Part shown: positions 7,119-33,020 of the stretch, one piece after another
Layout of the letters: each line of letters begins with the position of its first letter
Numbering within the stretch: position 1 is the stretch's first letter
Source: Malacoraja senta
Lineage: Eukaryota
Assembly: GCA_038087875.1 (NCBI GenBank)
Contig: CM075978.1
Span: forward strand, 174,964,001-175,028,000
Direction: 5' to 3'
DNA: 64,000 nt
The notes under the pieces: model-generated
Told to the model about the DNA's origin: nothing
Seen by the model: only the letters and a program-made list of their open reading frames with translations
Databases searched by the model: none
Program-made: the position numbers and the translations under genes

Positions 7119-7239
7119 CTTTAGTAACATTTAGGTTTTGAAAGTATTTATTTTTGTCTATCATCTGCGCCCGTCCTTTATTCAACGGCATATCCATAAA
7201 CTTTATTTGTCCTTTTCCCAATGCAGAGATAATGTACAG

Positions 7240-10200: not shown

Positions 10201-11440
10201 AGGCGACATGGTAGGGCAAATCCAACACGGAAGAAGTTGCTAGGGGCTTGGCGGATAGCGACCTTGTTGGAAGAAGGCATCATCACAGGAGCGTCGGAAG
10301 CTGGTCGCGGCCAAAGTCCGCCGACAAGAGGAGTTAAGTAGGTGTGCCAAGGCTGTGTCGCAAGCTAAACAGGGCCAGTGGATGAGATGGGAGAGTGTGG
10401 AAAATAAGAAGATCAGCTGGAAGGACACGTGGGAGATGGAGGCGAGCAGGATAAGTTTCCTCATTCGGGCAACCTATGATGTCCTTCCTAGCCCAAAAAA
10501 TCTCAGCCAATGGCTGGGCGAAGATCCATCATGCCCCCTGTGTGCAACACCAGCCACACTTAGGCACATCCTCACTTGGTGTAAAGTAAGCCTCTCCCAA
10601 GGACGGTACACCTGGAGACATAATCAAGTGCTCAAATGCCTGGCAGCGACTGGAACGCAGAAGAACAGCTAACAATGCCCTGCCGCCCAGAACAACCAAC
10701 CCAGTTAAGACAATTGCCTTTGTTCAGGGGGGGAACAAAGGCAATGGAAAATTCCACCAAGGACCAGGTTTGGACAGCTGGAGGCAGCCCGGGATTGGCA
10801 GATGCTGGTGGATGTGGACCAACGGCTTACAGTTCCATCAGAGATAGCCATCACCAACTTGAGGCCTGATCTTGTGCTCTGGTCGAACTCTCAACGCATG
10901 GTGTATTTTGTGGAGCTCACAGTCCCTTCGGAGGATGCTGTGCAGGAAGCCTTCGAAAGAAAGAAACTGCGATATACAGAGCTTGCAGCGGAGGCAGAAC
11001 AGCGGGGCTGGAGAGCTAAGATCTGCCCGGTAGAAGTTGGATGTCGAGGATGCGTGGCAACATCTACCTTAAGACTGATGAAGGACCTGGTGATCAGCGG
11101 ACAAGCCCTACGCCAGGCCATCAAAGAAACATCACGGGTGGCAGAGCGGAGTAGCCAGTGGCTCTGGCTGAAGAGGAAAGACCCCATTTGGTTTCCCAAT
11201 TAACCGACTAGACAGATGCAGAGGGGGGTGGTTCTGGGACGCCAGAATGCATCACTGAGCCTACTGGAGACGTCGTGGGTTCAATCAGCGAAACGTCGAT
11301 GAAAGTAGGTGCCCACTTGACAACCCCAATGACGTGTCTGCCTAGCCTTTCTCAACATCGGAGGAGCATAGGTGAGTGCAGAAGGCTCCCATCACCATCG
11401 GGAGTAAATTGATATTTGGCACTTTGGACTTTTAACATCT
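7240..11440 (+). mobile_element. HERO-like non-LTR retrotransposon (RT + CCHC finger + restriction-like endonuclease), 5'-truncated and frameshifted
   Basis: RARASSAPGPNGVPY, QKAGIPGFSGCLEHT, DLANAFG, YMDD, CPLCATPATLRHILTWC...GRYTWRHNQVL, RPDLVLWS...VELTVP..E...KKLRY. Clade assignment is from recalled motifs and the ends are approximate. Confidence 0.8.
7818..9295 (-). mobile_element. Penelope-like element (GIY-YIG endonuclease) with inverted terminal structure, inserted into the HERO element
   Basis: ORF 8057-8752: IIYCIRCSRC..YIGET.R.L..RF.EH...HF..GLN. About 7855-8262 is the inverted copy of about 8921-9298. 15-bp TSD TACCAGAGACTATCG (7803-7817 / 9296-9310). Confidence 0.9.
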
Positions 11441-11905: not shown

Positions 11906-11960
11906 ATGTTTATGTTTGCCGTGCTGCTATGTCTCTCGATCCTGCGCATGAGTTACACAG
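11906..11960 (+). CDS. Gene A exon 1: signal peptide
   Basis: MFMFAVLLCLSILRMSYT plus a phase-1 donor (CAG|gttaat); 55 nt; in phase with exon 2. Confidence 0.75.
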
Positions 11961-12130
11961 GTTAATATATTTCCCTCTATTAAACGAAAATAACAGGGAA
12001 AAGGTCAATCCGCGAAAAGTATAAGATGTACAACTCTTACTTTTCGGTCGAGCTATTTCAGCTATTTGGATTTTTATCAATCCGTTCATTGTCATTTCAC
12101 ATGTTTAACGTTTGTTTTTAATTCTGACAG

Positions 12131-12454
12131 TTACTGACGGGGCCTCCTCGTTCAGGGTGCGTCAGATTCTCGATAAGGTAACGAAAGTGAAAGGTGAAAA
12201 TGTGTCCCTATACTGTACTTTCCCAATCTTCGGTCAGAAAGCACTGGTGGATGTATACTGGAAGAGACACGGTCAAGAAGAGACTTTGAATCCCACCGCA
12301 AACAGGAGGGTGACAATGAACAATGTCCTGAAGGGATCTGCCGAATTACATCTGTTGGACATGAGCTTCCGTGACTCCGGGATCTATTATTGCAGTGTGA
12401 GACGCGGGGAAGGAAATAGTTCCAAAAGCAATGGCACGAGGATTATTGTACACG
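12131..12454 (+). CDS. Gene A exon 2: Ig V-set domain with J-like G strand
   Basis: GENVSLYC, VYWKR, SAELHLLDMSFRDSGIYYC, SNGTRIIVH; acceptor ttctgacag|, donor G|gtgagt; phase 1-1. Confidence 0.92.
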
Positions 12455-14462
12455 GTGAGTATTACTTGATGTTTCGAATCACAATACAAAAACAAATATG
12501 GTGTGCTACAGAGTTATAAAGTAGCAATAAACGGGCCCTTTCTCAGTCTGTACTAGAAGTTTTGCTCTAGCGATTTAAGTAATTGTTTTTTCGTGATTGT
12601 TGCGCCATGAGATCTTTGGACAATCATTATTCTTTAATTTCATATCATTTAGTTATCATTTTTATGTGTAGGGTTAATTTTCTTGGCGGCCCCTCAACTG
12701 CATCCTGCGAAAGGAGTATAGATTAAGATTGCAGATGGAAGTCAATGAAATATAAACCGTCATATGTTACCGATTATTGTAGCTGCAGTCGTTTAGTCAA
12801 AAAAACACTGCGTTCGAGTCTAGACCTGTGATATCCAGATGATGGAGCATTCTTGGGGGTTCACGAATTGAGCTCTTTGTTGTAGAATAACCATACTTGA
12901 CCATTTATGTAGTTATTTCTAGTCCAATTAGTAAATGTTAACAAAACGTATGTTGATAGAAGAAACATTTGATGAATAGTGAGTGTGATATATTCTAACC
13001 GCAATCTTGTATAAGACTATTCCACCGTGATTTTTAGGAATTCATAGTTTCAAAGAAAATGAATGATAAAATACGAGTCACAACACATCTGCGACTACAG
13101 AAATTAGGTTCTGCCTAGAACGTTATAATGGAAGTAACAAAAGTTCATGGTGAAAATTGTTAAAGAAATTCAGAGGTATAGCAAGGAAGAATAGGTGGGG
13201 TGCGTGGTGGCGTATTAATGTGGGTGGAAGACAAAACAACCCCATTAAATTATAAACGGGGGAAAATCTGAGAACAAGTCACAAAATATGTAAACAAAGA
13301 AGATAAAAGTAGTATCAGAATTCAAATGATTAAATTACAAATTGAGATTAATCAAAACGTTATCCGTCATTTTGACGTCGAGTTTCATTGGAACTCAGCA
13401 GAGCGTCGAGTGGGAGAACAGAAGCTTCAGTCTGAATGATAAATACACGTCAGCGGCATACTCGATTGCTGGGTGGCAATATGCCAGAAAGCTTCACCCA
13501 ACTGAGTACGATCTTTCCTCCGCACAGCGCACTATTTCAATCCCACATCAGCAACTACTGAATACACACATAAACGCTACTATACCTTGTCCAGTTTAAG
13601 TACCGTGACATGTATTGCGAACACGACAAATACCTAAAGCATCCCATCAATTTCGAAACTTATAACTGCTCAAAATAGAATTCAACAACTCCTAAACATA
13701 GGAATAGACCCTTCGGCCCACAATTTCAGTGCCGAATATGGTGCCAAGTTAAAATAATATCCGCTCTTTGCGAGACATATCCTTTCATTCCCTGCATTTG
13801 CCTATTTAAAAATATCTAAGATGCCCCTATCGTATCTGCCTCTGCAACTAGGCATGATGTAGTTAAGCTGGAAGGGGTATAGAACAGATTTACGAGGATG
13901 GTGCCACGACGCGATGGTCTGAGCTATAGGGAGAGCCTTTGGCAGGCTAGGACGTTATTCCTTGCAGCGCAGGAGGGTAAGAGTTGATCTTATTAAGGCG
14001 TATCTGATCATGACAGGAATAAATCTGGTATATGCATCGCCTTTTACCCAGAGTAGTGGAATCAAGACCTTGTAAACTAAACATTTCGCCACATTAAATT
14101 ACAATAACCGAGGAAAAGAAGTTTGCGTCGCAGTGGAGAGATCAATTATGTGCCCGCCACCAGGAAACCGAAATTGTCAGTCCCATGCACCCTTTCTTTC
14201 TTTCCGATCACTACTTGTGAAATATCCGCGGAAATTCTCTGGTGAGACCACTTGCATAGATCAGTTTGGGATGGAGATCAAAGATTTACCCACCGATGTA
14301 GAAAGAATGCTTTTGTTACGTGGACGGGAGCATGATGGTGCCGAACATTTGCCGTTAGAGATGGTGTCCTATTTCATGTTGAGTAAATGCAGTTGCTAAA
14401 CATTTCATTCTATTAAATCACCCCCCCCCACACACACACACACACAACCCCTATGAAAAGTC

Positions 14463-14773
14463 GGCATGGTGGCGCAGCGATAGTGTTGCTGCCTTACAGC
14501 GCTTGCAGCGTCGGAGACCCGCGTTCGATCCTGACTACGGCTGTTGTCTGTACGGAATTTGTACGTTCTACCCGTGAACGCGTGGGTGCCCTCCGAGATC
14601 TTCTGTTTCCTTCCACACCCCAAAGACGTAGAGGTATGTTTGTAAATTGGCTTGATAAATGTAAAAAATATCCCTAGTGTGTGTCGGATATTGTTAATAT
14701 GCGGCAATCGCTGGTCGGCGCGGACTCGATGGGCCGAAAGGCCTGGTTCCGCGTTGTATCTCTAAAACTAAAA
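14463..14773 (+). mobile_element. HE1/V-SINE (further copies or fragments near 16535, 21950, 23040, 24700, 41430, 61440)
   Basis: Box A TGGCGCAGCG, box B GTTCGATCC, V-domain core and CR1-like 3' end with TAAAAC tail. Confidence 0.85.
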
Positions 14774-15129
14774 CACAAAAAAGCAACACAATCACGACAG
14801 TACAGAGGGCGTGCTTGATACAGGGCGAATTAAGAAGGTTATGGTCAGGGTTAGCGATTAAGTAAATATATGACAGGTGCAAAATGATGTGGTTGAGTGA
14901 GGATATCCACGCACTGGAAGAAACAAATAGCGAGGTCGAGAAATAGAGAGAGTTGAAGGTGTTGAGGTTCAAATGGACCCGAGTATCCCTCTAGGTGAGT
15001 GATTGAATGTTTGCTTCAACATTTTCGTCTATTATGATTCACGTGAGTTACATATTTTTGCTGCAGACATGTGAGTGTTGGAATCTATCCCAAACAGTTA
15101 AGGGTGATTAATTGCCAATGTACAGGAAC

Positions 15130-16090
15130 AGAACAATATCGCAGCAGCATAACGGGTCTGTAGCACAGTACTCAACAAACAAACCAAAATGATTACAATA
15201 GAAAACTATATTAGTGCAAAACAAAAACAAATGCTCCAAAGTTCCGAGTACAACAAAGACGGTTTGTATTCGGTTTAGTTGGTGTTTGTAATGTCTAATA
15301 GCCTGATGGTTGTTGGCAAAAAGCTCTTTCACAACATGAAGGTCATGGTTTTCAAACGCCTATACCTTCTTCTCGATGGCAGTGTGGCAAGGTTGTGTGG
15401 GGTCTTGAAGCTGGCTGCTTTTTTGAGGCAGCTTCTCCTATAGATCTCTTCCATGGTTGGAAGGTCGGAACACCTGATCGACCGGGCTGTTTTCACCACT
15501 TTTTGTAATTCCATTCCTGGGCGTTCGAATTACTGGACCAGGCCGTGATGCAACCGGTTAATACGCTCTCTACCATATACTGCACAGGTTTAAGAGCGCT
15601 TTCGATTAAAGATGGTGTCAAGCAGGAAACTATGACTATGACTCAATGGCAACATACCGAATCTCCTCAATCGTCTTGAGAATTAGAAGCATTGGGGGGC
15701 TTTCATATGATTGTATGGATGTGCGGACTGCAGGACGGATCTTCAGAAATATGCATGCCAGGGAACCTGACGTTTTTGACTCTCTCCACCACCGACCCGT
15801 CGATGAAGATAGGTTGATGAATCCTGGCCCTTCCTCCTCTAAAGTCAACAATCAGGAATTTTACTGACATTGAGAGACAGATTGTTGTTCTAGCACCATT
15901 CGATCAGATGATGGAACTCCTCTGACACATCATTACCTGTAATTAGTTCAGCAACGGTGGTGTAGTCTGCAAATTTAAAGGTTGAGTTGGAACTGTTCCG
16001 GGTACACATCCATGGGTATGGAGTGAGCACACAGCCTTGAGGTGCCACTGTTCTGATAGTTATCGAGGATGAAGCGTGAGCAATGTGACA
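15130..16090 (-). mobile_element. Decayed Rex1/Babar LINE 3' fragment
   Basis: Minus-strand remnants (ELQKVVKTARSI, RRRYRRLK) similar to those at 28090-28420. Confidence 0.55.
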
Positions 16091-18214
16091 GCTTCACGGC
16101 ATTGGTCAGTTCCAATATGGCCTTTTGTATACCTGCTGTTAGAACATTATGGATTATCTCCAGTGATTTCTTCTTTCCTCTGTGTTATTTTCCCTTATAG
16201 GTGTAGCAAGCTGATGTCAAAAACCAATTGGATCACAACCATTACATCACGCATGCTACTTCCCCCAAAATCTGTCCTGCTCGCCCTCTCTCATCCCATG
16301 CTTGCTGCGGTTAAGAAGTGATTCTAATGTTTCATTTGTCTGCATCCTCCTTGCATGTTCAGTTTGTGGGAACAAATTACAGTTTCCTTTGGGTGTCATT
16401 TTCCACAGGTTCCGTGGGAAGCCATTTCTCTGCTTCACCCATTGAGTCATTAATGGCTACATATGGAGTAGTATTTTCATGCTATTATATTATATCTGTA
16501 CCACCTAATAACAATCCAATATTTGAGCCTCTGCACGGTGGCGCAGTGGTAGAGTTGCAGCCTATAGCGCTTACAGCGCCAGAGGCCCGCATTCGATCCT
16601 AGCTACAGGTGCTTGTCTGTACGGAGTTTGTACGTTCTGATAATAAGACGGCGCTTTGACTTCACCCCGTTATTACTTCATTGGAGGGAAACAATCACGT
16701 TGGTTGGCGTGATAGCTATAATTATCCTCACCTTTTTACAAAAGCTTATGTGAGATGTAATGTATTAATTTATCAATTGTCCATCATTAGTCCACTAGGG
16801 TAGATAACCCTCCTCTAATCGATCTGAAAGATTATGATTTGCTTAACCAACCAATTTCTATACGAACTTATTCCTAGCTCAGAATACGTATTATTGTCTA
16901 TTACCCTTGATCTATTCTTGATCTATTGATTATTGGTCATAATTTGATATATTTTCCTCAATATATTTGGCATTGGGTTGACACGCTTTGCAAAAATAAA
17001 CGCTATCATTGAATAGAATCACAGAGTCCTCGAGCAGGAAAACACACATTTCAGCCCAATTGTCCAATGCTCACCAAGATGTCACACGGTAATTGGCCCT
17101 TATCCTTCTCTAAACCTTTTCCCCAATTTATCCGTCCAAATGTCAGGTAAAAATTGTACCTCCCTCAGCGACCTCATCTAGCACCTCATTCCATATACCC
17201 ACCAGCATCTGCATGAAAAGGATGCCCCTTAGGTTCTTGGTAAGTGTTCCCCTCTCGCCTTCCCCGGAAATGAGTCCGCAAAATACAACATTCCACCATC
17301 ACCCTTTGCTTCCTTACATGAAGCCATTTCTCTACCCAGTGGCGAGTTCTCCTTGGACTACATGGGATCTAATGTTCCAGAACAACGTACCGTGTGGAAC
17401 CTTGTCAAAGTCATTTCTGGTCCATACAGACAACGTCTGTCTAGTGCTTTGCCCAAATCATCCTTTTTGGTTGCTTTAAAATAAATCGGATTCGTGACAC
17501 ACGATATTTCACCTATACAACCTTGCTGATAATCCTCGATCAGCTCCTTTCTAATCACATGCATACATATTTTATCCCTCTGAATCCTTTCCAGTGGCCT
17601 TCCTAATGCAGACTCGTTTACAGTTCCCATGGTTTTCCTTCCAGTCCTTCTCAAATATAGCCACAATATTAGCCATCCTCCAGTCTTCGTGTAGGTCTTT
17701 TCACGCTATTTCTCTATTGATACACACTCTTAATTTGATGTTTTGTTTTAATCAATTCTCGACGTCCCTAGATGTATTCCATTATAAGACACAACCGATG
17801 TGTTAACTCACATCACCACATTCTAAATTAATTGTCCCCCCCCGCATGCCCGCCACCCATGTATCCTATTCGCCATGACCACAGTTGATGAAACATACCA
17901 TCTTTCCATATCCTCATCCCCATGAATCTTCTTTTTTCCCATAAAAATAATTTCTTCTGCATTCTTTCAGTAGATCTTCTTGTTTATTCTTTAAACGTAA
18001 GTTTTGCAATGTCATGGTTAAATTTGAAATAACTGGAAGTGTCTGAATTAGTACAACTTAATAATCATATTCGTTTGCATCGGGAACAGAATTATTGTAA
18101 GGCCTACTATCTGATTGCGGCACATTAAATTATTTGGTTTACTTGAGATATCGGGTGTGATTTGCTTTTAATTGATCCTTATTACAAGTTCGATAGTTTA
18201 TGTCATGGTACCAG

Positions 18215-20054
18215 GTGGCGTCGAAGGACGAGAAGCTGAAGCAAAGAAGTGGAAGCCAAATAACCGAAGGGAAACTAAGCCGAAACGCCAAATAACCGAA
18301 AGCGTACAAAGCCGAAACGCCAACTAACCGAAAGGGTGGGGCGCCTAAATGCAAACTAACCAAAGGGCGGGACGCCTAAAAGCCAACTAACTGAAAGGCT
18401 GCGTCGCCTAAAAGCAAACTCACTGAATGGCCGCTCTGCCGAAACGCCACCTAACCGAAAGGCTGCGTCGCCTACAAGCCAACTAACCGAATGGCGCTTA
18501 ACCGAAAAGTCAAATAACGGACATGACATCGCCGGGGGGCCGGACTTGTCAGCGATTGGTCCAGACCCTCGCGTCCATCACATCACTGGCCGGTGGAGAC
18601 GGGAGGGTGGGGGTCATTTTCCTACACAAGCCATAGGTGACTGGGCACTTTGAATCCGAGCACCAAGTTGTAAGGGGTCGAAGGAGCGCATCCCCTCGGA
18701 CAGCCCTCACTCTCCCACGGCCACGGCCGCCCTCCGCCTCGTCTCCACCGTGCGGCCGCTCTGTGACGGGTTGTGTGTCGGCAGCGCTGGGTGGAGCAGA
18801 GGTGTGGGACAGGCTGGTCCCTCTCAGAGTCATTGACCACGATGCACCGCCATCAGAAAACAACCCCCACACCAGGGTGACCCCGACCCACTCACGGGGT
18901 GATTTACCACCTGACACCCACACCGGGTGATTCATCCCCACCCCGGCCGCGGGGTCACTCGCCCCGGGGCATTGGCATCCATAGTAAATCGCTTTTAAAA
19001 CATGGGGGACACACACAAATTCCCTGGCGGGCCGATGACAAGTGTGCATGACAACGAACAATGTTATGTCCTGCCTCTCCCCCCCTCCTGACAACAAGAA
19101 GCATGTTTTATTTATTACAGTCTGGTTGCCTGCGTAACGCACACAAGCTCACACGCACAAAAACACCAGGTAATCTGTAAACTGCCTTAACCGAAGATGG
19201 ACACAAAATGCTGGAGTAACTCAGCGGAACAGCCAGCATCTCTGGAGAGAAGGACGTTTCGGGTCGAAACCATTTTTCAGACCTGAAGACTGTGTCTGAA
19301 AGGTCTCGACCCGAAACGCCACCCATTCCTTCTCTCCAGAGATGCTGCCTGTCCCACTGAGACACTCCAGCATTTTGCGTATCTTTGGTGTGACAGTTGT
19401 CTCATTTCATCGGCTTCATGTATTTCTCATTTCTCATCTCATTTCATCGGCTTTACATGCGCCTGCATCTATACATTTGCAACAGAGGGATGGAATGGAT
19501 GTGACCACCTGCTAAAGCGAAGGCATAGTTAGGACAGGGAAATAAACCCACCACTTAATTAACCAGGTTCCCAAATGTAAGAACCATTTATACATGTAAC
19601 ATTTTTGTTATTAAATCAATGTAACTCTTTTTTGACTTTTCATGCCGAGTTAAAACCCCGTTCCGTGGGAAGGGCTTGTGGCAGCTGGTTTTATGGTGCC
19701 TTCATTGTTGGTAGGTGCTGTCCCTTCACATGGACCGCTGTCAGTGCCAGTTTTCTCAACTTCCATAGCCGTTCTGCATAAGTGTAGTCAGACGTGATGG
19801 ACCCAGGGATCTGGACCAATCGCTGACAAGTCCCGCCCCCTGTGACGTCATGTCCGTTATTTGACTTTTCGGTTGGGCGGCCATTCGGTTAGTTGACTTG
19901 TAGGCGACGCAGCCTTTCAGTTAGTTGGCTTTTAGGCGTCCCGCCCTTTCGGTTAGTTTGCATTTAGGCGCCCCAACCATTCGGTTAGGCTTCGTTTCCG
20001 TTCGGTTATTTGGCTTCCACTTCTTTGCTTCGGCTTCTCGTCCTTCGACGCCAC
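18215..20054. mobile_element. Foldback/TIR-type element with long internally repeated inverted arms in the V-C1 intron
   Basis: About 18215-18590 is the inverted counterpart of about 19790-20054, both built of AACTAACCGAA-type subrepeats. No clear TSD. Confidence 0.75.
19190..19387. repeat. Palindromic pair of Penelope-type terminal repeats (about 200-bp hairpin)
   Basis: CAAAATGCTGGAGTAACTCAGCG...CGTTTCGGGTCGA followed by its reverse complement. Confidence 0.75.
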
Positions 20055-20206
20055 ATCCGTACACGATTTCCCAACAACAGAGTTAAATATTTTACTATTA
20101 AAGGAACGCTCAAGAAGTTATGGTATTATCCATTTCGAAAGCGATTATATGGTCTTCTAAATACACATATAGGGGTGCTAACTCCTTTATCTTAAATTGT
20201 TTGCAG

Positions 20207-20488
20207 TGTCACCGACGCCTTTGAAGATTAAACAGATGAACACTCCTTCCCTGGCCCTAAACTGCACAACTGCTCCGTTTTTCCCGAAGGACTGTGAATT
20301 TACCTGGTATAAAGATGACCACGAAATCACTTCTGGAATAAGTTCCACTAAAATACGGAACGACGAGGGATTATACCTTGCTTCCAGCTTCCTGCAAGTA
20401 GTGGATAGCCGATCGGTTTATAGTTGCAACGTGTCTCACATCACCCTCCTGGTTCCGACCGTTGAAACTCACATAATTCTTGGAATGG
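20207..20488 (+). CDS. Gene A exon 3: Ig C1-set domain
   Basis: LNCTTAPFFPKDCEFTWYK, NDEGLYLASSFL, YSCNVSH; acceptor tttgcag|, donor G|gtatga; phase 1-1. Confidence 0.9.
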
Positions 20489-23400
20489 GTATGAGGATAA
20501 TACTTTCAATAATGTCTGTTTCATGTCAAGGCATTTCATGAATTCCCACCCAAAACACACGCCAGACCGTTTTAAGTGTTTGAATGAAGATAGTGAGCGT
20601 GTCTTTGTTGAAATGAAAAGAAATTAGATACTGGTTAGTAAGCGACATCGTGCAAAGATGACAGTTGTGTTTGTATGGTTTTTTAATAGCGAATGCTTGA
20701 ACTCGCTGTTTATCTCTGATTATATAGAGCTACACAGCATGGAGGCAAGACCCTTCGCCCCGCCCTGTCGACGTCAAGCAAGTTGGTATTCTGGACTAAA
20801 CTCATCTGCCCGCATTTGACACATTTCCCCTATCCAAATATCTATCCAAATATCCTTTGAAAATCACAATTGTATACGCTTCTATAGCTTCCTCGGAAAG
20901 AAATTGCCCCTTGGGCCCCTCTTAATCTTCCATGTTAAAAATCCATTACCCTGGGGAAAACAACTGTAAGCATTCATTTTCTCTACGACCATCATAATTT
21001 TATATACTTGAATTGGGTAAACCTCCTATGCCTCATGGGAAGAGGTCACAACCTACTCAGCATCACCGTATAACTCATCCATGAATTCCAGGTACTACTT
21101 GGTGAATCATTTCTGCACCTTTTCTAACTTAATGGCATGCTACGTATAGCAGGATGACCAGGACAGCACACAGTACACCAACAAGCTTTCAAGAGAGAGC
21201 GAGATAGGGCTCTTAAAAATAGCGGAGTCAGGTGATATGGGGAGAAGGCAGGAACGGGGAACTGATTGAGGATGATCAGCCATGATCACATTGAATGGCG
21301 GTGCTGGCTCGATGGGCCAAATGGCCTACTCCTGCACCTATTGTCTATTGTCTATTGTCTATAAGTCGTCTCAGCAAATACTTGTAAAGCTGTTTCCCTG
21401 CATAATAAGGGCACTGTTTTCTGTGTATATGTAAAATAATGTTCAGTCTTATCACTGTAACCGTGGAGATTGGAGAGAGATGGTAATCCAACATATTTCA
21501 AGTTTCAAGGGACCAAAACAACAAGCCTGAAGGCAGAGGCCAAGGGAGATTTAATAACAGACGCGGTTATTAACTTCGATGTTTTCTTTTTTCACGGTTA
21601 CTGATCTGTGATGAGATTCAAACAGAAGAGGAAAATGAAAAGAAAGGAGAAATAAGAAAATGTTCGAACGGTCATACATACAATAAGGAGTAGCGATAAT
21701 TCCGGCTGATGGGCGTTCCTCTGAACTGTCTGATCTGTTCCGTGCTCCCAGACATCTCTATGTTTTGTTAATTTTATGCGCCCAGCATCTGGAAGTTGTC
21801 CCATTATTTTCATTCATAGAAACTGCCAGTATACTTCCAAATTTCTGAAATTGTTGAATACATTTTTCAGGTCTAAAGTTTTAGTCAATGTAGTTGGAAG
21901 ATATTCCATAACGCTTTATTTGAGACTTCATTGAGGTAGCCCACCAAGTCCACGATGATCATCGATCACCGGCATATATTTCTCTGTTAGAACACTTTTT
22001 CATTCACTCACTACACACTGGCGACAAATTACAGAAGCCAATTAGCCTTCACACCTCCACATTCAAGGGATGTGCGAGGAAACCGTAATACCCGAAGAAC
22101 ACCAACGCGGTCACATTGAGAAAGTAGACATTCCACACGGACAGCATCCATGGTTAGGATCAAACCTGCGTCTCTCGCGCTGTTCAGGCAGTAGCTCTAC
22201 AGCTGGTATTTCCCAAGTGAAATAGACCTCACCAAATATACTGTCGTAATTGAAATCGGAAAAGGATAACCCTGGAGGGAGTACGCAGATGGTGTTAATG
22301 GAAGTTCTGAAAGGGCAAACATTATAATATCTATCGCTGAATGATAAGGTATGATGAGGAGGCACCCTGGGTGGTGTTAATGGAAGTTTTGAAAGGGCAA
22401 ACATTACAATATCGCTGAATGCGAAGGTATGGTGAGAAGGCAAATAGGTGTTCGCGGATACAGGAAAGTGAAGATGGTTTTTGTGAAATAATGCTTTTGC
22501 GATAAAGAAAGTAGAGGGAGATCAGCTGCCAGCTGGTGCCATGACTCCGATGGTCGTTTAAAATATAGAGCATGATTCCATGAGATTAGAGGGTAGTCGT
22601 ACAGAAGATGTTTACAAGAATGAGCCCAGGAATGAGTAGATCAACCTATGTTGAGCGTTTGTCGGCACTGGGCCTGTATACGCTGGAGTTCAGAAGATTG
22701 GGGGACCTCATTGAAACATACAGAATAGTGAAAGGTTTGGATAGAGTGCATGTGGAGAGTATGTTTCCACTTGCGGGAGAGTCTAGGACTAGAGGTCATA
22801 GCCTCAGAATTAAATAATTAAAATAAGGCAGTGGAGGCAGTCAGTGGATATTTTTTAGGCAGAGATAGATAGATTCTTCACTAGTACAAGTGTCAGAGCT
22901 TATGGGGTGAAGGCATGAGAGTGGGGTTAGGAGGGAGAGATAGATAGCCACGATTGAATGGCGAAGTAGAATTGATGTGTCGAATCGCCTAATTCTTTCC
23001 TATCCCTTTATACCTATCCTGGAGTCTGGATTGCTGCTGCACAAATCCACACGTCTTTGGGGTTTGAGAGAAACCTGGAGCACCAGGAGAAAACCCACAT
23101 GATTTCAGGGAGAGTGCAAACTCCACATAGACAGGGCCCAATTTAGAATTGAACCTGTATCTCTGGTGCTGTGAAACAGCAGCTCTGCTAGATGTGTCAC
23201 TGTTGAGTCCAAGGTGTTGATTGCCCTTCTCAATGAACCCCAGGCCTGTTAAATCCTCCTTCTGAAGTTTTCGCTGCCTCTGACTTGCACTCATTATTTT
23301 ATTGGTCTGAGAGTTTCAGGTTTCGAATTGAAATAATGGGATTTTTTTCGAACTCATTACTAATTCTGCAGCATTTAAAATTACTTAAGATTAGCTGCAG

Positions 23401-25609
23401 ATTATCGGCGAATCTGTGGAATAATTTGCTACAGAAGGCTGTGGAGGCATTCAGTGGATATTTTATAGGCAGAGAGAGATAGATTCTTGATTGGTACAGG
23501 TGTCAGACGTTATGGGGAGACGGCTGAAGAGTGGGGTTAGGAGGGAGAGATAGTTCAGCCATGATTGCATTGAAGAGTATACTTGATGGACCGAATGGCT
23601 TAATTCTACTCCTATTCCTTATCACATTGACCTTATGGACAAGGAGAAAGCTCTTCTTGTTCCAGGTGGGTGTTGGGACGAGATTTCAGAGCAGCAGACT
23701 GATAAATTGAGCATGCATGGCTGTGGACCAAACTGTGATGGAGGCAAACACGTTGAGGTAAAGGGTGCTTATAGAAACAGCGATACAACGTTTCAAGGTT
23801 TGAAGGTCAGTTTACTGTCACATGTACCAATTAAGGTCCAGTGAAATTTGCGATTACAGAACGTGCGATTATCAGAAAATGTCAAACAATGTCTCAGAAA
23901 ATACATATAGGTAATGGAGCCCGTTGACCTGGCTGAGTCGGAGGAAATGCGCTGGATATAACTGTGCGTGTACGCGGGCTGGTAATGGGAATTAATAGCA
24001 GCACCCCCCACCCCCAAGATGGATGTGGAAAATATGAGATTGAAATGCAAAGCTAATGTAGAGAGAGCATTGCAAAGATTGCCCTTAACTTATTTGCCCA
24101 ATCTTGCACTGGACGTACTTTCTATCAAAAATAAATGGTACAATCTCCTTGCTTTTACATGTTAGTTTTTCTTGATAAATAATAAGGATCCCATTAGCTA
24201 TGTACCTGCCTTAACTTTAGTCACCATTCTGAAATACTCTAAACAGGTATATTTTGTTTTTTGCTTTATAAATCCAATCGTTTAATCTTGGTTGCCTCTT
24301 CGTCGTTTCGGTTTTCATAAGGTACCAACGTTAAATGTAAAATTTCCACTTCCCCGCTATGATGAATAATGAGCTCAATCGCAGCGACGGAGACTATACT
24401 TTTCTCCAGGCCCAAAACCAACGGTTCGGGTGTAAATGTTTTATGTAGTTAAAGGAAGAAAACAGGTGCTTGGCATCAGCTAGTCCGTAATTGCACAAAA
24501 CCTACTGTCGCCCCATTTCATTCCCTGCACAGTCCTATCAACTTCCCACAAAATGACCATCACATTACTGACGGAGATAGGCTCAAAATACTGCAGTAGC
24601 TTAACTGGATAGGCAGCGTCATTGGAGAGAAGATATGGGTGACGTTTCGGCTCGAGACTCTTCTTCAAACTTAATAACTACGTATAATGGCCAATTAACC
24701 AACAATCCTGCAAGTCGGTGACATTTGGGAAGATGTTAGAGTACCCGACGGAAGTAACGTGGTCACCGTGGGAATATTAAAACTCCAGAGAACACTGGAG
24801 GTCAGAATTGATCCAGGGTCTCTGGAGATGTGAAACAGCAGAGTTACTAACTGCGAAGATGTGCCAGGAGTGGATCCAGAGTGTCACTTTCTCGGGGTGG
24901 TTTAACGTGACTAACGTCTATATTGTTCAAACCATTTTGAAAGCTGGGATAGTGCACGTGCAACACTTCGGTGGTGCGTCAATGATTTGTTCGCCAAACC
25001 TTCTCAGAGATATATCACAACTCAGAATAATTCAGATCTCGTGTTGATAAATGAATCCTATCGACTGCAGTTATCCTTCCAAAATTTCAACAGACGGTCG
25101 ATATGTCAATTAAACAGCCTTTACGATATTAATGATCCCAACACTAAGAAGACACAGACCCGAAACCCAGTAGAATAATCTATTTTACCGAATACAAAGT
25201 ACATTACAGATCGTGCACGAGAAATCGTGTTTTTTATGCCCAGTGGAATAAATTGTTGATGTTTTCACTCCAGGTAATTCGTTTCCTTATAGTTTATATT
25301 TTGATTGCCGGGGAATTCGAGTGACATTTCGCTGTCACCAGTGACACGGCGAAACGGGAAGAGGGGGTGACAAGCGCATCCGTACAATGTCAAAATAGTA
25401 TGTAGATATAAAGTATGAAGGAGAAACAACGGAAAATGTTTGAGATACTCAATTATCAGACAGAATATATGAAGAGTAAAACAAAGTTCAGCCCTCTTTA
25501 AAGGCTACTGATCGAAATTTTTAAATTTTAGAATCCGTATTAAGGATGACGTTTCGGGTACTTGGATGCACATGATAAAATAAGCATACTTTTGTTAAGG
25601 CGAGATCTT

Positions 25610-26050
25610 GCCTGTCAAACCCTTTCTGGTTTTTTGAGGAGGTAACAAGCGGGATAGACGAGAGAGTGTCAATAAGAGTCGTTTACTTGGAATTTAAATA
25701 GGCCTTTGATAAGGTGCCACGTGAGGCCGTTAAACAAAATAGAAGCGCATGGCATTAGATTAGCACGGATTGAAGATTCACTAACTGGCTGAAGACAAAC
25801 AGTGTCAATAAAGGGGCCTTTTGTGGTTTGTTGTGGTTGACTAGTGGTGTTCTGCAGGGGTCGGTGTTGTGTCTGCTGCATTTTACATTATATGTTAATT
25901 ATCTGGATGATGAAATTAATGGCATTTTCGCCAGGTTTTCAGATGACACGAAGGTAGGTTCAGAGGCAGATAGTGTTGAGGAAGCAGGGAGTTTGCTGAA
26001 GTACTTGGACAGTTTGGGAGAGTGGGTAATGAAATACAGCGTAGCAAAGT
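25610..26050 (+). mobile_element. CR1 RT fragment
   Basis: TSGVLQGSVL, FSDDTKVG. Confidence 0.75.
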
Positions 26051-26154
26051 GAAAATGTGGACCCATTCTGCAATTCCCTGGTTCATGTAATCTGATTATT
26101 CAATGAAGATAATCTCTGAAAAATTATAACATTTAGCTTTTATTTTCCCTTTAG

Positions 26155-26265
26155 GAACACGCGTTAAACTTGTCTACTTTCTGGCGGGTGGATTTGCCAT
26201 ATGCGTGTTAATTATTCTAGCGCTGCTATTTTTTGCCAGGCGGTGCAAATTACACAGTACTGAAG
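26155..26265 (+). CDS. Gene A exon 4: uncharged transmembrane segment
   Basis: GTRVKLVYFLAGGFAICVLIILALLFFARRCKLHSTE; acceptor ttttccctttag|, donor G|gtaaga; 111 nt, phase 1-1. Confidence 0.88.
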
Positions 26266-26824
26266 GTAAGAAATTAGTTGATTCTTGTCCGAAATTAGCG
26301 ACACAAGGAACTGCAGATGCAAAACGCAAAGTGCTTGAGTAACTCAGCGGGTTGGCAGCATCTGGGGATACAATGGCAATGTTCAGTTGAAGGAGCAACG
26401 AGGAGTGCTGAGATAACGATAGATTTAAACAACTTGGCATTTCCCCGACCGCAGCATTCTGTGGGAAACAAATTTTTAACCGGTTTAAGCCGTTGGTTGC
26501 AAAAGCATAGTTGTCGTTTGTTCTAAAAGAAGGCTCTTTTAAACACTGGGTGAAATGCTGCAAAGGTCGGGTTGTTTAAATAGGGACAGTTATCACAGGA
26601 AAGCGGAAGCAAACCATAGGTTTTCAACTTTTCCGTGTGCTTTTCCTTAGCATTATGACTAACGAGGAGAGGATTTGTTCAAATAACAAGAATAGCATGA
26701 CGGCAATGGTCAATTTCTGCAGCCGAACAAATCTGGTCACAACTCGATTATTAACTGACTATCGGCAGGCAGGTTGTGATACGTTGATGATTAAATTTGG
26801 TCGTTTTATTATGTTCTCTACTAG

Positions 26825-26868
26825 CCCCAGAATATATTGAGGACAGAACTCACCACTTCGAAAAACAG
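26825..26868 (+). CDS. Gene A exon 5: cytoplasmic spacer
   Basis: APEYIEDRTHHFEKQ; 44 nt, phase 1-0, donor CAG|gtaatt. An in-frame alternative acceptor gives a start at 26831. The 44-nt form equals the length of the matching exon in gene B. Confidence 0.72.
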
Positions 26869-27167
26869 GTAATTTTGTTGATGGTATAACAAGATATAAC
26901 CTATTGTATCCTGTTCTGCTAATGGACGTCCGTAATTATAATCACATTGATGGGACAACAGGATGGATCCACTTTTCATGGAACTCTCTACGTGCCTCGT
27001 TTGCAATTTTCCTTATCCTTCCGTATTCTTATGATATAGCCCATGATCGTCAGTGACGTGCACTTGCGTATCGTTCAGTTCAGTTTTATTTGTCATATGT
27101 AGGTTAACACAGGGTCAACAGTACAATGAAATGTGTTTGACAAGACAACGGGCCACCTCAGCAATAA

Positions 27168-27990
27168 TTTGATTTGATTTGATTTGATTTAATTTATTGT
27201 CATTGTCTTCAATTAAGAGACAACGAAATTCTCTTTCCCTTACAGTCATACAAAAAAAACACAAAAAAACCACACACACACAGAACACAGTAGTCCACAA
27301 CACAAACATCCCCACAGCGGCACCAAAGTTCCCCACTGTGAGGGGAGGAACCAAAGTCCAGTCAACCTCCTCACTGATGTTCCCCAATGTTCGGGGGGCT
27401 CCCGAGCACCCCGTAGTCGCCGCTACGGGCGGCCTGATTTTCAGGCCCTCTCGCCGGGAATGATGTAACCCCGACGTCGAACGCGAGAACATCCTCAGTG
27501 ATCTGGACCTCTGAATCGGCCACCTTCCACCGTAGTCCGCGGCTCCCGATGTCCACAGGCCGCGCTGGGCGTAGATTTGCGCTGGCGACCCCCGGCAAAG
27601 GGTCCCCGGACTCCGCGATGTTAAAGTCAGCGCCGCCCGCGTTGGGAGCTCCGCACCCACAGCTCCGCGATGTTGGAGCAGCGGCCCAATACTCCTGAGC
27701 TCCAAGCGGCGATCCCAGGTTCTGGTCCGTTCCCGGCAGGAAAGGCCGCGCCAATCCAGTTGGTAGGCCGCGAGAGGGGGTGGGCGAGGACGCGACTCGG
27801 ATAATATCCACATCCTCGCCAGGAAGCGACTGAAGAACGGTTTCCCTTTTACCGTACCCGCTGCCCCCCACATAAAATACCGAAAAAACCCAAATAACAC
27901 ACTCTAAACATAACAACAAAAAAAAGACAACCAGACCGTGGGCGGAGGCAGCCAGTAACAACGCCACCGGATGTCCAGGTGTCCATGATA
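27168..27990 (-). mobile_element. GC-rich non-autonomous retroposon with Rex1-type 3' tail
   Basis: Minus-strand tail AATTTCGTT...AATGACAATAAA-(TCAAA)n shared with the elements at 35713, 50655 and 62238. Confidence 0.6.
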
Positions 27991-28089
27991 TTACAAGGAT
28001 AAAATTAAGATTAAAAAGATAAGATAAAAGTGACATTGGTAGGACATTGGTAGATAATAAATAAAATAATCAACATATATGATGTGTTT

Positions 28090-28420
28090 ATGAGTTCAGA
28101 AGCCTGATGGCATGATGATAAAAACCGTTCTTAAGTCTGGTGGTACGTGCACCCATGCTCCTGTATCGTCTGCGGAAAATATCCGGGGGACAGTTGCCAG
28201 TGATGTGCTGAGCTGCCTTCACCGCTCTCTGTAGTGATTTGCGGCTGTGGGCAGAACAGTTCCCGTACCAGACTGTGATGCAGCCCGTCAGCAGACTCTG
28301 GATGGTGCAACTGTAGATGTTTGTGAGGATGCTGGCGATCATGCCAAACTTCCCCAATCTTCTCAGGAAAAAGAGCCGCTGGTATCCTAAACAGTTATGT
28401 CTAATCCGTCTGTGTCGAGC
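28090..28420 (-). mobile_element. Rex1/Babar LINE C-terminal fragment
   Basis: QRLFFLRRLGKF, CITVWYGN, RLKNGFY. Confidence 0.75.
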
Positions 28421-28846
28421 GGATTGTTCACTTTGTGAAGCATCATAACCGAGGCCCATCCTGTTCCAATTCAAAATTCACCCCTTATATTTTTTGCGGC
28501 GTAGCTCGTACTGATATATGACGGAAAATCTGCTGACATGTCTGAGCCCAGAAATCGCGTCAACTATATATTGTCCTCGAAGTCATCATCCAACAAACTT
28601 CCGGTCAGTGTTCTGCCCATTGGTTTCACGATTTTAGCTAATAGTTCACTAATTATTCAGGAAACTCAAACCAATTAGATACTAGTTGCTTCCGTTTACT
28701 TTTTTTAGTAATCTCATCATAGGGATGAGGCCAGAAATAGTAATGGAATGACTGGTCGTGCAGACCCAGCTTCTTTTATGTGTGCCCGTCTTCGCAGTTG
28801 TTTGTAAATGCGGAGTTTATTTCCTTTCAAATAAATGTTCCTTCAG

Positions 28847-28933
28847 TATCCAACGTACGCAGATTTGAACTTCAGCGGACAGAAGAAAACTGAGAAAAAC
28901 AGACGGCGCGAAAAACAAATTACCTATGGCCAG
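28847..28933 (+). CDS. Gene A exon 6: cytoplasmic, Tyr motifs 1 and 2
   Basis: YPTYADLNFSGQKKTEKNRRREKQITYGQ; acceptor ttccttcag|, donor CAG|gtaaaa; phase 0-0. Confidence 0.82.
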
Positions 28934-29028
28934 GTAAAATAAAGCGGAATTGTGCTGCAAGGAAAATTCGTGTACATCGCCCATATAGGCGAATCAGCAA
29001 CTCATGATCGCTAATTATTTTTCGACAG

Positions 29029-29151
29029 GTCAAAGAAATGTCTCAAAATAAACTGACCTATGCAACTCTGGATCTCACCGCTTCTCTGAAAGATCCAAGA
29101 ACGGCGAAAAATAATGAAACAGTGTATGCAGGAATCAGGATTTTTAAGTAG
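29029..29151 (+). CDS. Gene A exon 7 (terminal): ITIM + ITSM
   Basis: VKEMSQNKLTYATLDLTASLKDPRTAKNNETVYAGIRIFK*; acceptor tttttcgacag|; the first Val completes ITYGQV. Confidence 0.85.
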   Translation, partial: VKEMSQNKLTYATLDLTASLKDPRTAKNNETVYAGIRIFK

Positions 29152-29203
29152 CTGCGAAATCAGCAAACGTCCATTCACTCTAAAACCAACAATATTTAAA
29201 TTA

Positions 29204-29209
29204 AATAAA
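29204..29209 (+). terminator. Candidate polyadenylation signal of gene A
   Basis: AATAAA about 50 nt after the stop codon. Confidence 0.55.
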
Positions 29210-29959
29210 CCTGATTACCATTGAGTCAAAGATCGCACACATACATTATCATTTACAAGACAATGCTCAGTGAACAGGGGATTTTAATGAGCGATGATCA
29301 ACTCTGATAAATGTTACCCTTGTTAACGTCAACAGAAAAACGATTAATGATCATAGAATCGTACAATCATGCACAAGAGCTGTTCTGCACAATAAACGAC
29401 TTTCACCGCAAATCCTAGGTAACCGCATAAGATCCTTATCTCTCTAGGTTTTCCCCATCTAAGTGCCTGTGGAAATGCAAGTGATAGGCTGTATTTGTGT
29501 CTGCCTCCACAAACTCCTTGCCAGCTCGTCCATGGTCATGACCGCATGCTGCATACATGTTTATCCTAAGCATACGCTCGTCAGTTAAATAATTCTCCAC
29601 AATATTAAGAAAAAGACTCTGAATATCTATCCTGTCTGTACTCCTCATACTTTAAGAAAACTGAACAGATGCACCGTTGGAAGCATTTTATCGGGATGTA
29701 TCACAGGAATATGGGAATAGCTCCATCCAAGACCGCAAAAAATAACAGAGAATTGTGGACCAGCCCAAACCGTCACGCAAAACCATCTCCCTGCCATTAA
29801 CTCCATCTACACTTCACGCTGCCTCGCAAAGTCACCGGCATAATCAAGACAGGGTCTCAACCCAACAGGGTCTTCTCCCCTCCCCCACCAGGCAAGAGGT
29901 ACAGAAGTATGAAAACGCATACGTCCAGATCTAGTGACAGTTTCTTCCCAGCTGTTACC

Positions 29960-30915
29960 GTGTCATTTGGATGAGAACATACAGGGCATGATTAGCAAAT
30001 TTGCTGATGATAAAAAGGTGAGTGGTTTTGCAGATAGTAAAGATGGTTGTGAAAGACTGCAGCAGGATCTGGATCGATTGACCACGTGGGCTGAGGAATG
30101 GTTGTTGGAATTTAATACGGAGAAGTGGGAGGTGTTGCATTTTGGGACGTCTAACAAGGGCAGGACCTCACAGTAAATGGTTGACCTCTGGGGAGTGTTG
30201 TAGAGCAGATGGATCTAGGAGTGCAGGTGCATGGTTCCTTGAAGGTCGGGTCGCAGGTAGATAAGGTAGTCAAATAAGCTTTTCGCACTTTGGCCTTCAT
30301 CAGTCTGAGTATTGAGCATAGAGAGGTGTGTAAAAAAGGAGCTGCAGATACTGGTTGAAACAGTTTTGTTCAGTTCTGGGCACCATGTTATAGGAAAGAT
30401 ATTGTCCAGCTTGAAAGGGTTCAGAAAAGATTTCCGAGGATATTGCCAGGACTAAAGGGCGTGAGCAATAGGGAGAGGTTGAGTAGGCTGGGTCTCTATT
30501 CCTTGGAGTGCAGGAGGGTGAGGGGTGATCTTATAGAGGTGTACACAATCATGAGAGGAATAGATCGGGTAGATGCACAGAGTCTGTTGCCCAGAGTAGG
30601 GGAATCGAGGACCAGAGTACATAGGTTCAAGGTGAAGGGGAAAAGATTTAATAGGAATCCGAGTTATAACTTTTTCACACAAAAGATGGTGGGTGCATGG
30701 AACAAGCTGCCAGAGGAAGTAGTTGAGGTTGGGGCTATCCCATCGTTTAAGATACAGTTAGACAGGTACATGGATTGAACAGGTTTGGGGGGGGGATATG
30801 GACCAAGCGCAGGCAGATGGGACTTGTGTAGGTGGGACATGTTGGCCGGCATGGGCAAGTTGGGCCGAAGGGCCTGTTTCCACACTGTAGCACTCTATGA
30901 CTCTCTATGACTCTA
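29960..30915 (+). mobile_element. CR1 3' fragment
   Basis: ISKFADDKK...LQQDLDRL; LGLYSLE..R.RGDLIEVY; (ACTCTATG) tail. Confidence 0.85.
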
Positions 30916-32054
30916 TGAGGCAACTAGACGATCCTATCACCAACTAGCGAGCGGTCCTGTGCAATCGTCTACCTCATTGGTGACCCTCGGACTATCTTTA
31001 ATCGGACTGTACTGGACTTGCACTAAACTTTACGCCCCTTATCCTGTATCTGTACACTGTGGGCGGCTTGATTGTAATCATGTAAGTCTTTCCGCTAATT
31101 GAATAGCACGCGACAGAAAAGATGTTCGCTGTACCTCGGTACACGTGACAATAAACTAAATTAAAATAAACTAAACGTTGCACTGCGAATAAACTTATCA
31201 CTCTTAACGTATTTATAACAGAGGTTATGTCTGGTGAATGTCTACCGAATGGCTGCTGCACTCTCCTGATCCCTTTAAACATAGTCATGCACTCGCCAAA
31301 GGTAAATCAGCTAAAGCCAAACAAAGCTGTTAAATAGTCCCAGTTGTACGTTAGCCCTACTGTTCATTGCGTCGACGAAATTGAGTTACCACTAAACTAC
31401 TAAGTTAATGAATTCGGAATGAAATTGCCTCTTTAGATATATGTTGACCAGTTGTCTTTCCACTCGTCCGTTAAAGCGCCCTGTTCCAAGCTGCTGTCAT
31501 ATTCCAAGAGGCATTCGGGTGGGTCTTTAAGTTCCTTCTATAACTGCCAAACTTTAGTTGGAAAAATAGATGTACTCAATGAATGGCAGGTAAAGAGGCA
31601 GTATTACAGATTCACAATTATACAGGCGGAAACAAAAAGATCTTCACACAATGGAGACACAAGAAACTGCACGTGCTGAAACCTTGAGCAAAAAACGGAA
31701 TGGCGGGGGAACTCCGCAGGCCACACAGCTCCTGTCTGCAAACAAAATATCCAATCGGTCCAGTAGAATTATTTAACTTTATTTTCTCATTTTGATATGC
31801 AGCTGAACAATTAACAACCTGTTTTGAATCCGGTCATAACTGTTGTTCTATCATGTAGGGTGTTTGCTATATTGGTTCATCTTTATGGTTTGGTGTCACC
31901 GATATAAAGGGGGGACACACGTGGGGGCAGGGAATTCAGTAGATGAGATTAGATGATGTATCTTTGAGAAAGAAAACATGCTATTTGGCCGATCTTATCC
32001 ATACTGGTCATCAACCAGCTCTCTGTACTTCATCATCCCCGCCATGCTCACCAT

Positions 32055-33020
32055 CAATGATTTAGATGAAGGGACTCAAATAGCATTAGCAAATTTGCAG
32101 ATGACACAAAGCCGGGTGGCAGTGTGAACTGTGAGGAGGATGCTATGAGAATGCAGGGCGACTTGGATTGGTTGGGTGAGTGGGCAGATGCATGGCAGAT
32201 GCAGTTTAATGTGGATAAATGTGAGGTTATCCACATTGCTAGCAAAAACAAGAAGGCAGATTATTATCTAAATTGTGCAAAGTTGGGAAAAGGGGAAGTA
32301 CAACGGGATCTGGTGGTCCTTGTTCATCAGTGACTGAAAGTAAGCATGCATGTACAGCAGGCAAAGAAGAAAGCGAATGGCATGTTGTCCTTCATAACAA
32401 GAGGAGTTGAGTACAGGAGCAAAGATGTCCTTCATCAGTTGTATAGGGCCCTAGTGAGACCACACCTGCAGTATTGTGTGCAGTTTTGGTCCCCTAATTT
32501 GAGGAAGGACAGTTTTGCTATTGAGGGAGTGCAGCATGGGTTTACAAGGTTAATTCCCGGAATGGCGGGATTGTCATATGCTCAGAGAATGAAGCGGCTG
32601 GGGTTGTAAACTCTGGAGTTTAGAAGGATGGGAGGGAATCTTATTGAAACATATAAGATTATTAAGGGTGTGGACACACTAGAGGCAGGAAACATATTCC
32701 TTGTGTTGGGTGAGTCCAGAACCAGGGGCCACAGTTTAAGAATAAGGGTAAGCCATTTAGAACGGAGATGAGGAAACACTTCTTCGCACAGAGTGTTGTG
32801 AGTCTGTGATATTCTCTGCCTCAGAGGGCAGTGGAGGCCGGTTCTCTGGATACTTTCAAGAGAGAGCTAGATAGGGCTCTTAAAGATAGTGGAGTCAGGG
32901 GATATGGGGAGAAAGCAGGAACGGGGTACTGATTGGGGATGATCAGCCATGATCACATTAAATAGCGGTGCTGGCTCGAAGGGCCTAATGGCTTACTCCT
33001 GCACCTATTGTCTATTATCC
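32055..33020 (+). mobile_element. CR1 3' fragment
   Basis: RT C-terminus (RPHLQYCVQFWSP) and CTATTGT tail. Confidence 0.85.

Follow-up and report, generated by a model that had tools for sequence, protein, structure and literature searches.

A non-rearranging VJ-C1 receptor gene with an inhibitory-type tail in the skate Malacoraja senta and its relatives in cartilaginous fishes

We analysed a stretch of 64,000 nucleotides from the skate Malacoraja senta (assembly GCA_038087875.1, contig CM075978.1, positions 174,964,001 to 175,028,000 of the forward strand), hereafter the window, in which a preliminary description had proposed a complete receptor gene with one variable (V) domain, one C1-set domain and a four-tyrosine tail. 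This gene, here called gene A, lies on the plus strand at 11906-29151, numbered from the first letter of the window. Direct reading and a script check confirmed that gene A is a real gene and that it had been read correctly: its seven plus-strand exons join into 1026 nt that encode 341 amino acids followed by the stop codon, their start phases match (0, 1, 1, 1, 1, 0 and 0), the splice sites are canonical, and each internal exon is bordered by a pyrimidine-rich AG acceptor and a GT donor (gtgagt, gtatga, gtaaga, gtaatt and gtaaaa). Exon 1 (11906..11960, 55 nt) carries the start codon and the first part of the leader, MFMFAVLLCLSILRMSYT, ends in phase 1 at the donor ACACAG/gttaat and can be aligned to the leaders of the relatives presented below. 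Exon 2 (12131..12454, 324 nt) encodes the V domain through its J-like strand KSNGTRIIVH, and exon 3 (20207..20488, 282 nt) the sole C1-set domain. Exon 4 (26155..26265, 111 nt) provides the stalk, the transmembrane (TM) helix and the juxtamembrane segment RRCKLHSTE and is alignable to the TM exons of the relatives, while exon 5 (26825..26868, 44 nt) is a short cytoplasmic exon. The tail is completed by exon 6 (28847..28933, 87 nt), with tyrosines Y276 and Y299, and exon 7 (29029..29151, 123 nt), with Y312, Y334 and the stop codon. About 50 nt past the stop, at 29200..29209 of the same strand, direct reading finds ATTAAA/AATAAA hexamers that are candidate poly(A) signals.

The TM exon is the only strongly hydrophobic phase-1 candidate from the C1 exon to the tail, and its membrane span, LVYFLAGGFAICVLIILALLFFA, contains no charged residue, as had been described. 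An alternative arginine-bearing (activating) TM exon was looked for in the locus of gene A and none was found, nor is there a second immunoglobulin (Ig) exon besides the C1 exon between 12454 and 26155. Exon 5 is not selectable by sequence alone, with 166 phase-compatible AG..GT candidates, and was fixed because of its homology with relatives and of an equivalent short exon in the chimaera Callorhinchus milii. Its product APEYIEDRTHHFEKQ aligns to GTEISEDIPGQFEEQ, to AAENDENLSRYLENQ and to similar stretches in the relatives, and is homologous to their segment ending in FEEQ. The annotated C. milii protein P0172, mapped on its own locus (L001), follows the same exon order as gene A and includes the short exon GSRSHQNRSGYCEEQ, which ends in EEQ and runs into the donor gtaaat; thus, the 44-nt exon of the preliminary description is favoured over the use of a weaker alternative donor at 26883.

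Both extracellular exons are recognized by Pfam above the respective cut-offs, exon 2 as V-set (43.7 bits, cut-off 26) and exon 3 as C1-set (48.9 bits, cut-off 21), and the structural Cys/Trp/Cys residues are kept in both domains. The V and J parts are found in one exon, where KSNGTRIIVH, located on the plus strand at the place first reported, runs straight into the GT donor; V and J are therefore joined in the germline. Compared with the (F)GxGTxLxV pattern, the strand KSNGTRIIV keeps the GT and the hydrophobic positions but replaces the first Gly by Ser. No recombination signal sequence (RSS) with a 12- or 23-nt spacer was found within 3 mismatches in the 11.9-29.2 kb region, and in the whole window a single match of each kind appears, which is the chance level. 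An RSS-like pair immediately after the V exon (12451-12494; CACGGTG, 28 nt, ACAAAAACA) was taken as a chance occurrence, since the spacer has the wrong length and the pair is located downstream of the J-like strand. The description of gene A as non-rearranging therefore holds, with V and J in a single exon and no RSS nearby. A glycosylation sequon (NGT or NGS) is present in the J-like strand of 56 of the 63 V domains of the family presented below and is kept in gene A. A glycan at this position would probably hinder V-V pairing of the kind used by antibodies and T cell receptors (TCRs), which would favour a single-V binding mode, as in SIRP-alpha.

The third exon has all three hallmarks by which Hatherley et al. 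(2009) define C1-set domains in sequence, namely a (F/Y)(F/Y/H)P motif in the BC loop, a distance of 13 residues between the Cys of strand B and the Trp of strand C, and xVxH following the Cys of strand F (PMC2785349). In gene A they read FFP, CTTAPFFPKDCEFTW (exactly 13 residues from Cys to Trp) and CNVSH. The AlphaFold model of this exon has a mean predicted local distance difference test (pLDDT) score of 89.9 and superposes on bona fide C1-set domains with a template modelling score of 0.85 and a root-mean-square deviation of about 2 Å. The domain carries an extra, unpaired cysteine (Cys156), and the stalk contains no membrane-proximal cysteine.

The tail holds the four motifs announced in the preliminary description: PTYADL (Y276), which resembles an immunoreceptor tyrosine-based inhibitory motif (ITIM), the ITIMs ITYGQV (Y299) and LTYATL (Y312), and TVYAGI (Y334), of the immunoreceptor tyrosine-based switch motif (ITSM) type. 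The tyrosines are spaced by 23, 13 and 22 residues, and the two tail exons behave as repeats, their alignment scoring 30 against 18.4 +/- 3.8 in shuffled sequences (26 of 2000 shuffles reach the score). In the C. milii gene encoding P0172 the two tail exons are 63% identical to each other and each carries an xxYxxL and a TVYAQ motif; this shows that the four-tyrosine tail arose by tandem duplication of a two-tyrosine exon. The human SIRP-alpha tail likewise has four tyrosines in two repeats. Searched alone, the tail of gene A gave no match in the PDB, and a language-model search returned small adaptor proteins with scores of at most 0.80, which is the chance level.

Homologues of gene A were sought with an exhaustive phmmer search of the V exon against 1.8 billion representatives. 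The search retrieved single-V proteins of 260-450 amino acids with 44-53% identity, all of them NCBI Gnomon predictions, from Mobula, Heterodontus, Scyliorhinus, Cetorhinus, Chiloscyllium, Carcharodon and Mustelus. When a full-length member and a 17-sequence profile served as queries, the set grew to include Heptranchias, Hemiscyllium, Rhincodon, Stegostoma, Amblyraja, Leucoraja, Hemitrygon, Pristiophorus and the chimaera Callorhinchus. Altogether, the homologue searches returned chondrichthyan proteins plus one reedfish protein named 'SIRP beta-1-like' and one carp protein, and the reedfish protein (89 bits) was the sole strong match outside Chondrichthyes in the full-length and profile searches. 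When the two domains were scored separately, family members reached 84-152 bits with the V profile and 60-139 bits with the C1 profile, and non-family proteins with both a V and a C1 domain, the reedfish one included, at most 39 and 24 bits; among outsiders of any kind the maxima were 72 bits for V and 24 bits for C1. Scored with profiles rebuilt without it, gene A itself obtained 121.2 bits for V and 108.7 bits for C1. By these profile scores the family is a discrete one, found in Chondrichthyes only, and the match of gene A to it is far beyond chance. The proposal that gene A is a cartilaginous-fish receptor is thus borne out by its relatives, all of them chondrichthyan.

Within the family, the best full-length match of gene A is a Mobula protein (48% identity over residues 1-339), and alignments that run from residue 1 to residues 339-341 of its 341 amino acids give 47-49% identity with Mobula, 45% with Hemitrygon and 44-45% with Heterodontus and Heptranchias; its V domain is 53-55% identical to those of Mobula. 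Every exon of gene A, the 44-nt one among them, has its counterpart in predicted proteins of mantas, stingrays, sharks and Callorhinchus. No orthologue more than 55% identical to gene A was retrieved in the homologue searches, and a search with its closest homologue gave no protein flagged as the window's own among the results. In a maximum-likelihood tree built from 74 ectodomains, the sister group of gene A is the manta/stingray (Mobula/Hemitrygon) clade, with a support of 98 in the Shimodaira-Hasegawa-like approximate likelihood ratio test (SH-aLRT), which is the position expected for a skate gene, and both are included in a 26-row subfamily (SH-aLRT 100) that also contains shark members. 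The family mixes ITIM-tailed members with members whose TM span contains an arginine and whose tail is very short, and the ectodomains of the two kinds are sometimes near-identical. This combination is the pattern of paired receptors, and the activating-type relatives in the subfamily of gene A suggest a paired-receptor system.

Full-text literature searches turned up no paper describing this chondrichthyan V-C1 family, and the papers on UrIg2, shark MHC, the CD28 family and the whale-shark genome do not mention it. Gene A is thus a further member of a family that gene-prediction pipelines list and that is undescribed in the papers found. The novelty of gene A is limited, a possibility foreseen in the preliminary description, because gene A is not a one-off and a large family is already present in automatic annotation.

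Two observations on other members concern the organization of the family. In C. milii, scaffold MU249845.1 (15.25-15.61 Mb, loci L001-L003) carries at least four family genes that share one orientation and are spread over at least 360 kb, so the family is clustered in a chimaera too. In the skate Amblyraja radiata, the member P0109 (493 aa) has a V-C1-C1 layout in which the two C1 copies are near-identical; its second C1 arose when the C1 exon was recently duplicated in tandem, and the domain count of SIRP-alpha was reached independently.

The way in which gene A would act can be proposed from the example of SIRP-alpha, where SHP-1 and SHP-2 are recruited by the phosphorylated ITIMs (PMC12975943). 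The single V domain, carried by one C1 domain, would bind a ligand, and ligand engagement would lead Src-family kinases to phosphorylate the four tail tyrosines. These are arranged as two tandem repeats, each consisting of an ITIM-type TYAxL motif and a second YxxV/I motif 22-23 residues further on, and each doubly phosphorylated repeat could dock the tandem SH2 domains of SHP-1 or SHP-2. Such docking would dampen cell activation, as it does in SIRP-alpha.

Gene structure, V-set and C1-set domains, family membership and the motif content of the tail are direct observations on gene A. We consider it, with a probability of about 0.72, to be an intact, non-rearranging, inhibitory-type member of a Chondrichthyes-wide family of V-C1 paired immune receptors. 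Four points weigh against this interpretation. The J-like strand of gene A reads SxG, whereas GxG is kept in 60 of 63 relatives; the first tail motif has a Pro at position -2, which is not canonical for an ITIM; and we infer signalling through SHP-1/2 from the motifs only. Finally, one poly(A) RNA run from another organism, of which about 6% was read and placed on 26000-29500, gives zero depth on the TM and tail exons and covers only the transposon of intron 5; expression of gene A is neither supported nor refuted by this run.

Gene A could instead be an intact-looking but silent or dying copy in a multigene cluster of fast turnover. The introns are filled with transposable elements, and no annotated protein of gene A was retrieved, which, together with the absence of RNA support and the degradation of GxG to SxG, would suit such a copy. 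However, a decaying gene is hard to reconcile with seven exons that are all open and have good splice sites, with the complete retention of the Cys/Trp/Cys residues of both domains, the C1 motifs and the four tail tyrosines, or with the confident C1 model, and we regard a silent copy as distinctly unlikely. Contigs from DNA runs match the locus of gene A, some of them with zero differences. One contig copy of 28862-29041, a stretch that spans tail exon 6, the 95-nt intron and the beginning of exon 7, has 19 differences in 181 positions; therefore, a paralogue of that stretch, about 90% identical, exists elsewhere in the genome of the organism sequenced in these runs.

Intron 5 of gene A contains a high-copy transposable-element insert (27053..28456), noncoding for gene A, with a word depth of 10^4-10^5 and up to about 3x10^5 in the DNA runs. 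Transcripts of the element occur in the related organism's RNA run, and a paralogous contig, which joins 27076 to 28395, is without it. Open reading frames (ORFs) of reverse transcriptases of the long interspersed nuclear element (LINE) type and of related retroelements occupy 720-11203, 30443-39584, 44956-49072 and 53142-53630, the longest encoding 770 aa (37272-39584).

The 3' part of a second family gene, gene B, lies on the minus strand at 54265-54574 and 61068-61295 and is convergent with gene A. It comprises a TM-like ORF that includes YGCATGGIIFILLLIITMVY, then tail exons, one ending in CSYAALDLSRSKMVSNMKGTEERTTYAE and the other being TLYSQTKRVNASQKLIYASVELSRF followed by the stop codon; its V and C1 exons must lie beyond the end of the window. 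No similarity at the DNA level was found between the exons or introns of gene A and those of gene B. Two further minus-strand stretches, 54023-54067 and 51754-51822, match residues 1-15 and 25-47, respectively, of P0147 ('PTPNS1-like') from Leucoraja erinacea, with identities of 87% and 83%. The matched residues form an odd N-terminal extension of that protein, and the window shows no V or C1 exon further along the same strand; instead of another gene, these stretches may represent a shared upstream exon or one derived from a repeat. No host genes other than gene A and the partial paralogue gene B were seen in the 64-kb window, whose remainder consists of transposons.

The affinities of gene A to described proteins were addressed by structure, by language-model features and by sequence. 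With the close homologue P0151 as query, a Foldseek search of the reviewed AlphaFold models (Swiss-Prot) placed SIRP-alpha of human, cow and rat in the top three positions (E-values of 4e-17 to 6e-16), followed by PD-L1, TAPBPR (rank 5), CD276 and butyrophilins within one to two orders of magnitude in E-value, with B7-H6 at rank 26. The language-model features of another close homologue, P0004, ranked two SIRP-alpha clusters first (score 0.96, with 204-206 of 256 features shared). For the C1 domain of gene A taken alone, the nearest fold was the beta-2 domain of MHC class II (template modelling score 0.85, root-mean-square deviation about 2 Å), and SIRP was absent among the 30 reviewed-protein and 50 PDB matches listed. 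The SIRP-like character attributed to gene A is thus upheld by whole-protein fold and language-model features, as judged from these homologues, and not by the C1 domain, which is closest to MHC class II beta-2.

The NCBI names of the family disagree with one another and include 'tyrosine-protein phosphatase non-receptor type substrate 1-like' (that is, SIRP-alpha-like), 'tapasin-related protein-like', 'NCR3 ligand 1-like', 'immunoglobulin lambda-1 light chain-like' and 'uncharacterized'. They stem from weak best matches and vary among isoforms and near-identical paralogues. If the second and third of these names were taken at face value, together with the ranks of TAPBPR and B7-H6 in the fold search, gene A could be a ligand or chaperone like B7-H6 or the tapasin-related protein and not a receptor. 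This is very improbable given that its V domain is of the VJ type, that an ITIM/ITSM tail is found in a paired-receptor family, and that the names are as inconsistent as described.

Many members carry the SIRP-alpha-like name, and this, with the top three fold matches, the first-ranked language-model clusters, the resemblance of the four-tyrosine, two-repeat tail to that of SIRP-alpha and the reedfish 'SIRP beta-1-like' protein as the sole strong profile match outside the chondrichthyans, raises the question of true orthology. According to this explanation, the family would consist of orthologues of tetrapod SIRP that have kept an ancestral one-C1 form, and gene A would bind CD47 as SIRP-alpha does. 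The SIRP hallmark, however, is a V-set followed by two C1-set domains, and gene A has one C1, whose nearest fold is not SIRP; the proteins that follow SIRP-alpha in the Foldseek ranking are close behind it; the reedfish match falls to 39 and 22 bits per domain, the generic Ig level; and searches with the tail alone gave nothing SIRP-specific. No neighbour informative on synteny was seen in the window or at the three Callorhinchus loci, which show only family genes and transposons, the 10-kb flanks of the three Callorhinchus genes holding family genes only. We therefore consider orthology with SIRP unlikely. By its sequence features gene A appears to resemble SIRP-alpha in layout and tail, having the four-tyrosine ITIM tail of the SIRP-alpha type, but membership of the SIRP family is not established, because the second C1 is missing, the affinities of the individual domains are mixed and the loci read show no informative neighbours.

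C1-set domains are found almost exclusively in adaptive immune molecules, and a kinship of SIRP with the precursor of antigen receptors has been under discussion for a long time (PMC2785349). In a PDB structure search, the closest superpositions of the V-C1 unit were those on light chains of antibodies and on TCR chains (Z about 15 over 185-193 aligned residues). By sequence, the best PDB match of the C1 exon was UrIg2, with a score that is the sum of three domains of 16-22 bits (best single domain 21.6) and is no better than that of the Ig light-chain constant domain. PDB rankings by sequence, obtained with single exons or family profiles, are dominated by multi-domain chains with additive scores and do not discriminate among C1 families. 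UrIg and UrIg2 are non-rearranging VJ-C genes of elasmobranchs that encode three to eleven C domains and show linkage to either the MHC or the Ig/TCR complex, and the text of the paper describing them makes no mention of ITIMs (PMC12227049). Gene A was considered as a UrIg/UrIg2 gene and excluded, since these need three or more C domains and gene A has one (PMC12227049).

Gene A might nevertheless be a relic of an antigen-receptor precursor of the kind of UrIg or of PRARP (VJ-C1 genes known from bony vertebrates), which would work not as a SIRP-like monomer but as a C1-paired homo- or heterodimer, for example with a neighbouring paralogue. The superposition on light and TCR chains and the UrIg2 match fit this explanation, as do the normal pairing of C1-set domains with another domain (PMC2785349), the unpaired Cys156 and the convergent paralogue within the window. 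But the UrIg2 score is generic, UrIg and UrIg2 have at least three C domains and MHC or Ig/TCR linkage (PMC12227049), the stalk is devoid of a membrane-proximal cysteine, and a glycan on the sequon of the J-like strand, present in 56 of 63 V domains, would probably interfere with V-V pairing; we judge a precursor relic improbable.

An intact inhibitory-type member of a paired-receptor family remains our reading of gene A. The existence, in sharks, rays and chimaeras, of a large V-C1 family that comprises both inhibitory and activating-type receptors would place such receptors at the base of the jawed vertebrates and would offer a testable model for the function of a non-rearranging molecule that resembles an antigen receptor. 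To this family gene A adds one well-resolved, apparently intact member of the inhibitory type with a fully defined exon map, and its value is that of a clean example for cloning, expression and ligand search rather than of a new kind of gene. It can be pictured as a predicted immune "brake" at the cell surface, half an antigen receptor fused to a tail in the style of SIRP-alpha. On a far more speculative note, which we hold to be improbable as well, the chondrichthyan one-C1 family, gene A included, could be the surviving ancestral form of SIRP and the nearest living model of a pre-RAG V-C1 'half antigen receptor', with members that form TCR-like dimers by way of their C1 domains, the dimers signalling through partners of inhibitory or activating type.

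Compared with known systems, gene A shares with antibody light chains and TCR chains the two-domain V-C1 unit, for which they are the best structural match in the PDB. Unlike in rearranging Ig and TCR genes, with their separate V and J segments flanked by 12/23 RSSs, there is no V/J split and no RSS in gene A, and its product is anchored in the membrane with an inhibitory-type tail of its own. With UrIg/UrIg2 (PDB 9DMX) it has in common a germline-joined VJ exon, a split leader, C1-type sequence after the V domain and its occurrence in cartilaginous fish (PMC12227049), but it has one C1 instead of three to eleven C domains and its per-domain match to UrIg2 is generic. SIRP-alpha (SHPS-1, PTPNS1) resembles gene A in having C1-set sequence after a V domain that ends in a J-like strand, a single-pass uncharged TM segment, four tail tyrosines in two repeats of the kind that in SIRP-alpha recruits SHP-1/2 (PMC12975943) and, on both sides, activating partners with a basic TM residue; it differs in having two C1 domains, and the C1 of gene A is not specifically SIRP-like. 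The chondrichthyan relatives correspond to gene A from start to stop. Although gene A departs from them in SxG for GxG, in the extra C1 cysteine and in having about 8 residues fewer before the first tail tyrosine, its architecture is that of the Mobula birostris protein XP_072135199.1 ('tyrosine-protein phosphatase non-receptor type substrate 1-like'), the Heterodontus francisci protein XP_067905922.1 ('tapasin-related protein-like') and C. milii P0172: a split leader, a VJ exon, one C1 exon starting with V(P/S)PTPLKI, a TM exon, a short exon ending in E(E/K)Q and two-tyrosine tail exons.

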